Of a stretch of DNA of 64,000 nucleotides, positions 23,060 to 38,927 are shown piece by piece. The notes beneath the pieces were generated by a model. The model saw nothing but the letters and a program-made list of their open reading frames with translations. It had not been told where the DNA came from and made no database searches. The position numbers and the translations under genes are program-made. This stretch comes from Monocercomonoides exilis PA203 (Eukaryota; Protista; Preaxostyla): contig LSRY02000053.1 of the NCBI GenBank assembly GCA_001643675.2, positions 248,001 to 312,000 of the forward strand, written 5' to 3'. Numbering within the stretch: the stretch's first letter is position 1; every line of letters begins with the position of its first letter.

Positions 23060-24621
23060 AAATTAAAAAAAATATATTTGGGTGATCTTTTTTGATATCA
23101 TAAAAAAGATCAAATTATGAAAATGGAATAAAATTATGGTATTTTTGAAAAATTGATTCTAGCACTAAATTGTGATTTATAATGATACTATTTGTCATTT
23201 AATTTTATTTCTTCTTGGTTTCATCCTTTTTATTTTTTGAATCAAAGATTTGGTGAATAAGTGCATTTTATTTGAAAATTAACAGTTTATTCAAAAAAAT
23301 TATAATATAAATGAAATTTTAAATCGATAACCTGGCAACCATGAGCATATTCAAAAATTTCAAACATTCAGAAAATTGATTTATAAATAAGAATCTTTTT
23401 TGTAATGGATTCTATGATCATCAGATTCGAAAGAACTGGAATTATCCATTCACAGAATGAAAATACCGTGAGTGAACATTGCCTGTAGAACTAAGAATAT
23501 TATTTCCTGTGTGACAACAAGAAACGAGGCAATGCAATATTATTGGAATTCTGCCTGATGATTTTTGTTAATTGGATAGCCAAGGGGAATGCAACAATTT
23601 CATCAATAACACAAAAAGACATAATGTATGTGAATTTTATAGTTCTATAAGTTGTGAAGATATTTCCGTCTGTATCCTCTCCAGAGTCCAGAAATCCGAA
23701 TTATTGTTGAAATGGCCAATCTCCGCTTTGTGGAGCAACACGATGAGAACAGAACCGAATATTTTATAGACATTGGGAATCAAATGAAGTTACGGAAGAT
23801 ACATGATTTTTATTTGGAACAAGAGATGAAATCAAATTCAACTGATGTTTTGTTGAATGAAGATTTCTGGATGGAATTCTGTGAAGAACAAAATCTGCAC
23901 AATATTGTATAGAATTTGGAATATAATTCAGTGAAGCAGTTTGTGGTATTTTTGGAATTGGAAATCAAATGGCCATATGGAAAGCTGGACATTTATTGTG
24001 AAAAAAGGCAAGAATTCAATGGAAAAAAGGAGAACCCCAAAATATCAGTTATATTTGTAAGGTTTTCCTGTTTTTCGGACTGCACCAGGCAGACATGGAA
24101 AGCGACGAAATTCTATTTCTGATTCCACTTTTGCTTCAAAAGAGTGGAGAAACTCCAACTACGAGACATCCAATAATCGAGTATTTGCTTGCAGTCGAAA
24201 AACATTCAGGCCAACCACATCTGAATATCATTCTTCGAAAGGACAGCTATTTTTAACAAGCAATGTGATTATCATTCGAAGTTTGTTTTCTTCGATGCCA
24301 CAGCCGATGAAAGAGAATTTGATGGTTTTTGTTTTCATCGTTTGTTTTTCAACAAAGTTGTTGTTTCGCTCAGTTTCTATGTTTGTGCTGAGTCATTGAA
24401 TTTTGTGCCTTGAGCATCGGAGAATGCATTGAGGCTGCATTGTCATCTGCATCATGAGCATCGATAAGCGAATGCCAACTTTTTCTATCATTCCTCCTCA
24501 ACGTCGTTGAAGAACAGTCAATTTATTGTGATAACATTCATTTCTTTTTTCTTCGTTATCTCCTTCCACATGCAGGTCTTCTTCAAATCACATCACAACG
24601 CTATATTTTGTATTATCGATA

Positions 24622-25533
24622 TTGTCAAAGCAGAGTTCTTCTTATTCAGTGTGCACATCAGAGAAAATGAGTGAAATGTGTGGAAACGAAGAAGAATTGC
24701 CAGACAAGAACGGAACAATCAAGACAATACGCCCACACAAATCCCACCGATCACAGCCTTGTTCGCCGCTCACACCGAACTCCCCGCCTTTCACTGCGTT
24801 CGACCCGTCGGTGTCTGACCAGTGGCTGTATGTGGATGGCACCCTCAGACAAAGCGAGTCAGCAGCGTCCCCCACGCCATCAGTGATATCTGAGAAAAAC
24901 TCACTCGTTTCGTTGAGTCTGAGCATCTTCGGCTGGGAGGGCGATGCACACCCACATCCTGTTTCTGATGCGTCTGCCTCATCAGATGCACACGATCAGT
25001 CAGCAGCAGCGGCTTCATCTGCAGTACAGAGGAAGGCACAGCCAAGTGGGAAGCGGAACAAGCCAGCCACTCTGCGCATTTCAGTACCGCCGCTGAGGCT
25101 TTCGCAGGCGTCTGTGACGTCTCCGTTCTCAGAGACGAGCGGAAGTGCACACGCTTCGCCTTCTGCTTCATCGGCCAGTCTGCAGCAGCAGCATTCGCAG
25201 AGTCAGAACACCAACACCTCGTCAGCCAACCGGCTTCCACTTAGCAGGTGTCAGCATGCGCCATCGATGCTCAACCAGAGAGAAGGGGATGCTACTGAAA
25301 TGGCTCAACAACAACAACAACAACAACAACAACAACAGATGTTACAGCAACAACATCAACAGCATCAGCAACAGATGATGATTTTGAATGAGCTGCACAT
25401 GAAGACACAAATAGCGACCATCAAAACGGAATCACACAGACAGTTGTGTTCAGCTGAGTGGTGTTTTCGATCAGCGGGGTGTTCAAAACGAGTCTGCAGA
25501 GCTTCATCGAAGAGCAGGCTGAGCGAGGGATAG
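24622..25533 (+). CDS. Ser/Pro/Gln-rich low-complexity ORF (probable gene fragment inside the element)
   Basis: 303-aa ORF, GC-richer than its flanks, with a (CAA)n poly-Q tract; no recognisable domain. Confidence 0.35.
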   Translation: MSKQSSSYSVCTSEKMSEMCGNEEELPDKNGTIKTIRPHKSHRSQPCSPLTPNSPPFTAFDPSVSDQWLYVDGTLRQSESAASPTPSVISEKNSLVSLSLSIFGWEGDAHPHPVSDASASSDAHDQSAAAASSAVQRKAQPSGKRNKPATLRISVPPLRLSQASVTSPFSETSGSAHASPSASSASLQQQHSQSQNTNTSSANRLPLSRCQHAPSMLNQREGDATEMAQQQQQQQQQQQMLQQQHQQHQQQMMILNELHMKTQIATIKTESHRQLCSAEWCFRSAGCSKRVCRASSKSRLSEG

Positions 25534-36404: not shown

Positions 36405-37690
36405 TTTTTCTCTCTCTCTTTCTCTCTCTCTGTTTCTTTCTCTTTTCTCTCTCTTTCTTTATCTCTTTCTTCCTTTTCTCTCTCTCTCTTTTTTTCTTTT
36501 TCTCTCTTTCTTTTTTTTCTATCTCTTTCTCTCACTTTCTTTCTTTCTCTCTCTTTTCTCTCTCTTTCTTTTTCTCTCTCTCTCTCTCTCTCTCTCTCTC
36601 TCTCTTCTCTCTTTTTCTTTTTCTTTCTTTCTCTCTCTCTCTCTCTCTTTCTTTCTTTCTCTCTCTCTCTCTCTCTTTTCTCTCTCTCTCTCTTTTTTCT
36701 TTTTCTCTTTTTCTTTTTTTTCTATCTCTTTCTTTCTCTTCTTTCTTTCTCTCTCTCTCTTTTCTCTCTCTTTCTTTTTCTTTCTTTCTCTCTCTCTCTC
36801 TCTTTCTTTCTTTCTCTCTCTCTCTCTCTCTTTTCTCTCTCTCTCTCTTTTTTTTTTCTTTTTCTCTTTTTCTTTTTTTTCTATCTCTTTCTTTCTCTTC
36901 TTTCTTTCTCTTTCTTCCTTTTATTTCTCTCTTTTTTCCATTTTTTACTCTTTCTCTCACTTTCTTTCTTTCTCTCTCTTTTCTCTCTCTTTCTTTTTCT
37001 TTCTTTATTTCTCTCTCTCTCTCTCTCTTTCTTTTTCTTTCTCTCTCTCTCTCTCACTTTCTTTCTCTCTCTTTCTCTCTCTTTTCTCTCTCTTTCTTTT
37101 TCTTTCTTTCTCTCTCTCTCTCTCTTTCTTTCTTTCTTTCTCTCTCTCTCTCTCTCTTTTCTCTCTCTCTTTTTTTTTCTTTTTCTCTCTTTCTTTTTTT
37201 TCTATCTCTTTCTTTCTTTTCTTTTTTCTCTTTCTTCCTTTTTTTTCTCTCTTTTTTCCATTTTTTACTCTTTCTCTTTCTCTCCTTCTCTCCTTCTCTC
37301 CTTCTCTCTCTCTCTCTCTTTTTCTTTCTTTCTTTCTTTCTTTCTCTCTCTTTCTTTTTATCTCTCTTTCTTTTTCTTTCTATCTCTTTCTTTCTCTTCT
37401 TTCTTTCTCTTCTTTCTTTCTCTTCTTTCTTTCTCTTTCTTTCTTTTTTCTTTTTCTTTTTATTTTTTTATATTTTTGTCTTTCTTTTTATCTCTCTTTC
37501 TTTTTCTTTCTATCTCTTTCTTTCTCTTCTTTCTTTCTCTTCTTTCTTTCTCTTTCTTTCTTTTTTCTTTTTTTTTTTATTTTTTTATATTTTTGTCTTT
37601 CTTTTTTTTCTATTTCTTTCTTTCTTATTTAATTTTTTTCAATTATTCTTTTTCTTATTAATTTCAATATTTCTAATTTCTTTCTTTCTT
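36405..37690. repeat. About 1.3-kb CT-rich polypyrimidine low-complexity tract with internal duplications
   Basis: Almost purine-free on the + strand; blocks such as CTATCTCTTTCTTTCTCTTCTTTCTTTCTCT recur. Confidence 0.9.
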
Positions 37691-38927
37691 TTTTTGTATT
37701 ATTTATCAGTTGGTATTATATCTTGTTTTTATGTATTTCATAATTCAACATATGAAATACTTTGTTTTTTTTTTAATTACTGTTAAAATAATTTGTTCAT
37801 AATCTCGAATTCTGTGCATCTTTTTAGCAAAAAGATTTTCTGTATCTTTCATAAATAAGCAATTTTGCTGTTTCTGATGATAGAATAGGTTTTTCTGTAT
37901 CATCTTTTTTTTGCCTTTTTTGAATCCACTTTGATTCGATCTAAACAGTTGTGAAAAAAGTTTTCTGGTTTTTGTTTCAAACAATGTTTTCTTTTTAAAT
38001 TCAAATCTATCTATTGGATGTTGTACATTTCATCTTTTTTTCCCACTAATGTTTTCATTTTATTCTCTTTTGTGAAATGAAACTATTTCGACATATGACG
38101 ATGAATGTTGAAAATAATTCTTTGCTTTCTGTTGTTTGTTTCACATTGATAATAATGAAGAAAAAACAAAAAAACTTTAATTGAAAGAAATGCCTGGGGT
38201 TCTGGTTTTTTTTTATTTGCATCTACTGTTCCCTTTTTGAAAATTGAAAGGAGACACTTGACACCTAAAAAGTATTCAAATGTGAATTGAATATTACAAA
38301 AAAAAAACAAGAACAAAAATGAAAATAAAACGATATATCTATTATTTATTATCCTGCAATCCATTTTTGTCTGAAATTCTCTTTTCGCTTGATTGAAAAC
38401 TTCCTTGTATATCAAAGATTGATATATTCAACTGAAATATGTTCAAAATTGATTTGTGAAACTTAAACAAGAATTGAATGAAAAAATCATAAATACAGCG
38501 AAATATTCGAGTATACAAATAAAAGAAAAAAACACTAAAAGAATTAATGTTTTTGAACTAACCAAAGAAAAATTTCAAATCTGAGAACGTTCATATTCAA
38601 ATAAAAGCCAGTTTTAAAATGAACAACCAAACAAAATTAATTATGGAACTCAAATTTTAGCACATATTCGTTAAATTATTTGAAAATCCATTTATTTCAG
38701 TCAATAAAATAAGGCAAACGATAATAGTATTTTATTCTCCAAATTGACGAATATCTATTATGGGAATTGATCATTCGTCGTAAAAAATTATGATATCAAA
38801 AAAAATCACCCATTTATTTTATTCAAATATCATTCTTAAAAGGATACCTCTTAGACATGACAAAAGAAAATTGAAATAATGATAAAATGACTGACAAGAT
38901 ATTTCTGATTTGTCAAAAATGTTTATA

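Follow-up and report, generated by a model that had tools for sequence, protein, structure and literature searches.

The window analysed here, 64,000 nucleotides of Monocercomonoides exilis PA203 (contig LSRY02000053.1, positions 248,001 to 312,000; C51:248001-312000 in the assembly searched, which has 82,301,135 bp in 101 contigs), raises the question of whether two short inverted repeats that face each other across 15.7 kb are the ends of one transposable element and, if so, of what kind. We conclude, with a probability of roughly 0.87, that 23080-38811 is one complete copy of a large cut-and-paste DNA transposon bounded by terminal inverted repeats (TIRs). It carries a gene in which a USP deubiquitinase domain is fused to a transposase with three catalytic aspartates (DDD), and a cargo gene captured by the ancestor of a subfamily of about ten copies.

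The two TIRs are complementary at 23 of 24 positions, with one mismatch, and each abuts ATTT, just as a first, sequence-only reading of the window had described (Table 1). Matches to the TIR with up to three mismatches numbered four in the window and none in 100 dinucleotide-preserving shuffles. The same reading had called the two TIRs otherwise unpaired. This is correct for the outer pair, which has no nearer partner within the window, but not for the window as a whole, where five TIR-like copies were found, three of them belonging to two transposable elements of the miniature inverted-repeat type (MITEs). One of these MITEs is nested in the element and the other lies outside it, and they can be aligned with each other from end to end. 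The left end also contains a 28-bp palindrome capable of forming a hairpin (GATCTTTTTTGATATCATAAAAAAGATC, 23086-23113), which overlaps the left TIR and is lacking from the right end. No convincing subterminal repeat arrays that might act as transposase-binding sites were found in the element. The best-conserved block, 6.5 kb in length (29245-35738), was considered as an element with nearer TIRs of its own and rejected, given that no inverted repeat was found around it and that homology to sister copies reaches the outer TIRs. As had been claimed, there is no housekeeping gene between the TIRs according to a Pfam scan of the window proteins.

The evidence that carries the conclusion comes from other copies in the genome. 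The left 300-bp end had six more full-length matches and the right 300-bp end four, and both ends co-occur with the same interior and with 4-bp target-site duplications (TSDs) at other loci. Including the window there are six complete copies of 15.1-24.1 kb, each with the left TIR, the same order of interior segments and the right TIR. Across copies, homology is bounded by the TIRs, the interiors are collinear and the DNA outside the duplications is unrelated among loci, with the exception of one unrelated repeat. A perfect direct 4-bp duplication of the form AWWT flanks all six. In the copies with non-palindromic TSDs (ATTT and AAAT) the flanks are direct and not inverted repeats; therefore, they are target duplications and not an extension of the TIRs. 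In addition, partial copies were found on contigs C41, C1, C7 and C34, and their unpaired ends also abut AWWT. The proposal of one large TIR transposon with a 4-bp TSD is thus borne out by five further collinear copies with TSDs of their own and unrelated flanks. Two outcomes had been named beforehand as speaking against it, namely ends derived from separate truncated short elements and closer termini around other transposase copies; the six collinear copies exclude the former, and the latter was not seen in the sister copies. The features of an autonomous class II element (TIRs with a TSD, an uninterrupted transposase ORF, several copies at dispersed sites and MITEs derived from the element) are all present and, as far as can be judged from the sequence, the element may still be autonomous.

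The transposase gene had been described as intact, and its open reading frame (ORF; 31153-35424) is indeed uninterrupted over 1,423 amino acids (aa); it is also intact in the copy on C11. The USP part matches PF00443 with 43.1 bits against a cut-off of 23.9 (E = 5e-11), retains an intact Cys box (GNTCY) and His box (NHGHY) and shows weak similarity to the solved structures of USP21, USP46, USP12 and USP8. With the domain above threshold and both boxes in place, it is, on sequence criteria, a member of the USP/UCH family. A low-complexity linker lies between this domain and the part that contains a CxxC motif and the transposase. No Pfam or NCBIfam model matched the C-terminal 520 aa, and the attempt to name the transposase by Pfam, NCBIfam and cluster names returned only "hypothetical protein". 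Among 1.84 billion representative proteins, this C-terminal part has 817 relatives at E ≤ 1e-3, which include oxymonad proteins of Blattamonas nauphoetae and Streblomastix strix; the nearest database relatives of the transposase are M. exilis proteins. Ten homologs from other organisms were scanned for a UCH domain and none had one.

In an alignment of 50 relatives, D101, C103, C106, D167, D249, H285-G286-K287 and D291 were invariant. The AlphaFold2 model had a mean pLDDT of 77, with values above 90 in the core, and in it D167 lies on beta1, D249 directly follows beta4 and D291 begins the helix that comes next, which is the arrangement of RNase-H transposases. The best PDB matches given by Foldseek were IstA (E = 1.4e-4), Hermes and Mos1, while VIA-align gave Z scores of 9.3 for Mos1, 8.8-9.1 for retroviral integrases and 8.7 for IstA. 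Going by the predicted structure, the C-terminal part is a DDD transposase of the integrase/transposase fold, and the earlier assignment to this class gains from a D-D-D triad that is invariant in the 50 homologs and sits on a predicted RNase-H fold. In B. nauphoetae, two loci that encode distant transposase homologs (L042:12224-14564 and L043:12600-14312) have 3.4 kb in common, part of which is a long tandem array of 30-bp period; the search around both loci gave no convincing TIR or TSD.

With respect to the superfamily, all six complete copies have a 4-bp TSD and the triad D167/D249/D291 lies in an RNase-H-like transposase. Both are among the Sola hallmarks summarised after Bao, Jurka et al. 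(2009) in a source that also gives a usual size of 2-9 kb for these elements, with some above 15 kb (PMC10741241). Sola has no model in Pfam (PMC5751038). A Sola-like placement by DDD and 4-bp TSD is plausible; that the element is Sola proper is somewhat doubtful. The main alternative accepts a real large transposon but places it outside Sola, in an undescribed DDD lineage of the DUF7869 type or among relatives of Zator/ISAzo13 or IS21-like transposases, and we regard the odds for it as even. Apart from the lack of any Pfam or NCBIfam family at threshold for the transposase, it draws on the nearest named family, Pfam DUF7869 (PF25273), to which 29 of the 30 named Atlas clusters found by language-model features belonged (score 0.93). 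Clusters of DUF7869 were also neighbours by fold (TM score 0.49-0.51), and its hidden Markov model gave sub-threshold matches in nine of the 50 homologs, over the region of the second and third Asp. The gathering threshold of 26 bits was not reached: the window protein gave no match and the best homolog 21.9 bits (E = 1.5e-4). A relation between the transposase and DUF7869, as judged from these matches, would be a distant one, and no mention of DUF7869 was found in the literature searched. In one DUF7869 Atlas cluster, 11% of the members carry PF07592 as well, a bacterial family to which Bao et al. (2009) reportedly related the Zator transposases. IstA, the top Foldseek match, belongs to IS21, and two homologs touch NF033546 (E = 0.007).

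On the other side, the TSD of Zator is reportedly 3 bp; the TSD here is 4 bp, and PF07592 was not among the families matched by the 50 homologs. Neither do piggyBac and Kolobok agree with the element, in which the targets are ATTT, AAAT and ATAT instead of TTAA and no match to PF13843 or THAP was obtained. Moreover, a 4-bp TSD and a third catalytic Asp are textbook Sola features (PMC10741241).

The TIR is not confined to this subfamily. A pattern with two free positions and up to two mismatches matched 2,439 times in the genome (1,219 + 1,220), whereas the reversed pattern used as a control gave no match; the 35-bp form of the left end occurred 22 times. Among the 100 exact matches listed, 36 had the form of the large element (..TTTTTTTTGATATC..) and the rest that of the MITEs (..TTATTTTTGAAATC..). 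Oriented pairs of the large form among the matches listed spanned 4.5, 5.3, 5.4, 6.1, 12.0, 12.8, 19.5, 19.8, 21.1, 21.9 and 22.2 kb, and the five largest (19.5-22.2 kb; two on C1 and one each on C7, C8 and C9) enclose USP-transposase ORFs that had been found independently. The description of the element as unusually large has to be withdrawn, since related TIR pairs span 12-22 kb and its size is normal in this genome. The copy at C30:340393-358669 likewise has a MITE nested in it, with the duplication ATAT/ATAT, and this MITE family thus inserts repeatedly into the large elements.

The catalytic domain had at least 467 first-look candidates genome-wide. Most of the 82 candidates scored were about 50% identical to the catalytic domain of the window and had open frames of 1,050-1,300 aa. 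Copies of this abundant family are 83-98% identical to one another, which indicates more recent activity than in the window subfamily. A rough estimate, extrapolated from a small sample, gives about 440 large and medium elements with a mean of about 14 kb, that is, about 6 Mb or 7% of the genome, and the window element belongs to a very large undescribed family that probably occupies several percent of it. In the Oxford Nanopore Technologies assembly of M. exilis PA203, 46% of the genome was reported as repeats and 35% as "unclassified", the latter being tentatively ascribed by the authors to expanded kinase families (PMC8767320). The supplements of that paper contain no mention of Sola, Zator or transposons (PMC8767320). 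A more far-reaching proposal, which we make only tentatively and consider rather doubtful, is that of an undescribed eukaryotic DDD lineage of superfamily rank, related to DUF7869, with distant homologs in Blattamonas, Streblomastix and many metagenomic eukaryotes. It would be fused to USP in Monocercomonoides and comprise about 450 elements (12-24 kb) and about 800 MITEs, several Mb and, roughly, 5-10% of the genome, and hence a sizeable part of the 35% of unclassified repeats.

The cargo ORF corresponds, at 53% identity, to aa 247-722 of the transmembrane-kinase ORF at 13798-20745 (2,315 aa), and its ectodomain family has at least 2,198 first-look candidates genome-wide, many of these paralogs forming arrays of 500-800-aa ORFs on C80, C53 and C71. 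It is open in the window copy and in five sisters (520-609 aa). The ectodomain ORF and about 1.4 kb of upstream DNA are present in every sister copy; therefore, the gene would have been captured once, by the ancestor of the subfamily before its spread. In this regard, the view that the element has accumulated host-like fragments holds for the poly-Q segment (24026-25607) and the nested MITE, which are specific to the window copy, but not for the ectodomain and its upstream region. The latter was found at full length only in six sister copies and two C80 array loci, while its last ~480 bp are common to many array genes on C80, C53 and C71. The cargo is the most diverged segment of the element (67-77% nucleotide identity vs. 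82-95% in its flanks), and its synonymous divergence (dS) is 0.7-1.0, compared with 0.19 for the USP domain in the same copy pairs. In addition, the cargo protein of the window is 75% identical to C80 array genes and 62-64% identical to the versions in sister elements, and one C80 locus matches a stretch of the cargo upstream region with 90% identity. These comparisons suggest that the cargo has probably been exchanged with genomic paralogs by repeated gene conversion.

It has to be weighed whether the ectodomain gene is instead a working passenger that is spread by the element and drives the expansion of the receptor and array family. This we consider improbable. The frame open in the window and five sisters and the native upstream DNA that travels with it agree with such a role, as does the overlap of unclassified repeats with tyrosine-kinase genes reported by Treitli et al. 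(PMC8767320). However, repeated conversion from functional paralogs would explain the open frame without any function for the element, and the cargo matches only a part (aa 247-722) of the receptor. Furthermore, copies borne by elements number at most about ten, against more than 2,000 paralogs; the large arrays lie outside the elements read, and the cargo upstream region was not found beside the ORFs of the abundant family. The suggestion that the element is a vehicle for gene-family spread is consequently weak; for the window subfamily it is not supported, and the element is not a major vehicle of the ectodomain family.

Two further observations concern this gene family. The ORF at 13798-20745, which lies 2.3 kb to the left of the element, is of the single-ORF receptor type; its ectodomain consists of beta-helix-like repeats of the GGG[ILM] kind, and a kinase domain lies at the C terminus. 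The ectodomain arrays are dense at C80:1.15-1.84 Mb, C53:0.2-0.52 Mb and on C71, and their matches come as equal-scoring pairs in opposite orientation, such as C80:1448349(+)/C80:1472308(-), which suggests large palindromic duplications.

The interior of the element is a mosaic. The copy-specific segment of 1.58 kb has a paralog on C18 (81%), and the same slot is occupied in C39, C41, C13 and C12 by a Ser/Glu/Lys-rich segment of 1.6-2.4 kb that is 95% identical among them. As far as position 33,900 or so, all sisters resemble the window to much the same degree. Beyond it, and through to the right end, two groups are distinguished: group A (window, C39, C30 and C1) shows 90-93% identity, whereas group B (C13, C11, C41 and C12) is only 67% identical to the window in nucleotides and 58% in protein, with an unrelated right subterminal region. 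Both groups nevertheless share their terminal ~26 bp. Judged by these alignments, a module consisting of the catalytic domain and the right end is one that was swapped between element lineages.

Several points weigh against the conclusion that 23080-38811 is one complete transposon of the kind described, and they must be set beside it. In the one assembly of strain PA203 used here, neither an empty site nor an excision footprint or polymorphism came to light. The target is restricted to AWWT, and a chance match is expected in about 1 in 3-4 copies; the caution that ATTT is common in AT-rich DNA was therefore justified for any single copy, although a match in six of six copies would occur by chance in well under 1% of cases despite this restriction. 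The sister copies are 5-20% apart and give no sign of recent movement of the subfamily. The ratio dN/dS was dropped as a test of selection on the cargo, after a non-coding control in AT-rich DNA gave values of 0.4-0.65. The gene model is uncertain: in this copy as well as in the abundant family, residues ahead of the first ATG are conserved, which makes an upstream exon likely. In this respect, the ORF at 30401-30829 has no stop in five of six sister copies (143 codons), compared with 8-15 stops in a non-coding control of 233 codons, and, with its conserved frame, it may represent either a further gene of the element or a 5' exon that belongs to the transposase gene. With regard to Sola, Majorek et al. 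grouped this superfamily with RNase H1-like domains and placed integrases in another clade (PMC3985635); the transposase model is nearest to integrases, Mos1 and IstA, and this is a mild argument against Sola. Finally, a chance or composite pairing is extremely improbable. In this case the TIRs would come from separate short or truncated elements such as MITEs that happen to face each other, and the 15.7 kb between them would be ordinary DNA. Such a pairing could appeal to the 2,439 TIR matches, to the MITEs with the same TIR inside the element and at 20 bp from its left end and to the ease with which AT-rich 4-mers match. However, the left 1 kb, the interior order and the right end recur at five other loci between unrelated flanks, each locus with its own perfect 4-bp TSD, neither outer TIR has a complete short element of its own, and a pairing of MITE ends was rejected in view of the six collinear copies.

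Under the conclusion of a complete cut-and-paste element, its history and mechanism would be as follows. The transposase would bind the 24-bp TIRs, and the element would be excised and reinserted by DDD-catalysed strand transfer with a 4-bp stagger at AWWT, a cut that would have left the ATTT duplication in the window. The USP domain might act on ubiquitin carried by chromatin or by the transposase itself. A common TIR unites the subfamily, the far larger USP-transposase family (typically 12-22 kb), the derivatives of 4.5-6 kb and the MITEs of about 255 bp, and the MITEs and deletion derivatives would be mobilised in trans. The ancestor of the subfamily of about ten copies would have captured a short ectodomain gene with its upstream DNA from the receptor-kinase and array family, and the cargo would since have undergone exchange with paralogs in the genome, gene conversion being the probable route. 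Element lineages would have swapped the catalytic domain together with the right end, and the window copy would in addition have gained the poly-Q gene fragment and the nested MITE.

The features of the element and the complete copies are listed in Table 1; segment boundaries were taken from sliding nucleotide identity to the sister copies.

Table 1. Features of the transposon at 23080-38811 and its surroundings (window coordinates), and the six complete copies of the subfamily.
Feature	Position or length	Strand	Remarks
MITE outside the element, 255 bp, same TIR family	22805-23059	+	TIR-like ends 22805-22828 and 23040-23059; 20 bp left of the element
TSD, left copy (ATTT)	23076-23079	.	adjoins left TIR
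Left TIR, 24 bp, GGGTGATCTTTTTTGATATCATAA	23080-23103	+	preceded by ...ATATTT
Left subterminal non-coding region	23104-24025	+	82-86% identity to C39, C30, C13, C41, C12; homology from TIR
Copy-specific replaced segment	24026-25607	+	no counterpart in sisters, except C12 homology extending to 24303
Dispersed repeat, ~500 bp	24026-24527	+	at least 128 first-look candidates, 77-89% identity
Poly-Q ORF fragment	24622-25533	+	second part of copy-specific segment
Cargo-gene upstream region	25608-26999	+	79-91% identity to sisters
Receptor-ectodomain ORF, 523 aa, GGG[ILM]-type beta-helix repeats	27000-28571	+	67-77% nucleotide identity to sisters
Spacer, cargo to transposase gene	28572-31150	+	82-95% identity to sisters
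Small ORF inside spacer, 142 aa	30401-30829	+	no stop in five of six sisters
USP-transposase fusion ORF, 1,423 aa	31153-35424	+	open frame from 31135, 1,429 aa
USP/UCH deubiquitinase domain	31939-32778	+	PF00443; Cys codon 31963, NHGHY at 32674, ICND at 32734
Predicted RNase-H-fold transposase core	34024-34842	+	catalytic Asp codons 34351, 34597, 34723; CxxC upstream at 34159-34170
(ATTT)36 microsatellite	35599-35744	.	repeat scan
Nested MITE, 256 bp, MITE-type TIR	35745-36000	+	within ATTT/TTAT microsatellite; apparent TSD TTAT
CT-rich (TTTC)n microsatellite, 1.3 kb	36407-37704	.	repeat scan
Right subterminal region	37705-38787	+	82-87% identity to C39, C30, C1, C34; homology ends at TIR
Right TIR, 24 bp, TTATGATATCAAAAAAAATCACCC then ATTT	38788-38811	-	pattern scan
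TSD, right copy (ATTT)	38812-38815	.	adjoins right TIR
Complete copy, window	15,732 bp		TSD ATTT
Complete copy, C39	24,055 bp		TSD AAAT
Complete copy, C30 (C30:340393-358669)	18,277 bp		TSD ATTT
Complete copy, C13	15,352 bp		TSD ATAT
Complete copy, C11	15,136 bp		TSD ATAT
Complete copy, C12	15,869 bp		TSD ATAT

Some of these segments require comment. The ~500-bp dispersed repeat is joined here to the poly-Q gene fragment; it may represent either a non-autonomous element or a 5' module that members of a gene family have in common. The first part of the spacer (28572-30400) was found at full length in sister copies only, and the region 35599-37704, with its microsatellites, including (TTAT)n, and the nested MITE, could not be aligned to the sisters. 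A 468-aa ORF at 36380-37786 was rejected as a gene; it has no Pfam match and is a spurious product of the (TTTC)n repeat. Directly to the right of the transposon there is an inverted-repeat element (38907-39324) with arms of 117 nt at 38949-39065 and 39185-39301 that are 90% complementary. It probably represents another MITE family, and the insertion thus sits in a small nest of transposable elements.

Pack-MULEs and CACTA elements are DNA transposons that capture genes. The window element resembles them in carrying a host gene fragment and its flank between TIRs, amplified with the element; it differs in that the carrier has an intact transposase ORF, in that a single old capture is common to the subfamily and in the continuing exchange of the cargo with its more than 2,000 paralogs. 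Proteases are likewise known from transposons, as in the case of ULP1 in KI-MULEs and OTU in Helitron-like elements. These also are DNA transposons that encode a protease of ubiquitin-like modifiers, whereas here one ORF encodes both a domain of the USP class and a cut-and-paste transposase of the DDD type. UCH is mentioned alongside Helitron-like elements in one source (PMC11417382), and no description of a USP-fused cut-and-paste transposase was found in the literature searched. Among solved structures, the catalytic cores of IstA (IS21), of Mos1 and of retroviral integrases come closest in fold, with a sequence identity of 8-14%; in contrast to IS21, the window element is eukaryotic, measures 15-24 kb in its family and has no IstB-like helper. 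The DUF7869 proteins are nearest by language-model features and fold and have no assigned function, and the window protein has no match to their model. Sola elements are also bounded by TIRs, with a DDD transposase and a 4-bp TSD, and the large size is within their range (PMC10741241); the window element is likened to them by features and not by sequence, and it differs in the USP/UCH domain fused to the transposase and in the AWWT target.

The family can be defined by a 24-bp TIR, a 4-bp TSD of the form AWWT and a USP-transposase gene, with thousands of termini and autonomous members of 15-22 kb. As such, it offers one concrete and annotatable explanation for part of the 35% of unclassified repeats in M. 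exilis, a model amitochondriate eukaryote. It is also a clean case of fusion between a cut-and-paste transposase and a deubiquitinase, and it poses the question of whether deubiquitination of the transposase or of chromatin aids transposition. Exchange between lineages has affected the catalytic module as well as the captured surface-protein gene, which is relevant to the mutual influence of such elements and the gene families of their host. In the M. exilis genome, the wider family seems to be a major component that has so far gone undescribed.

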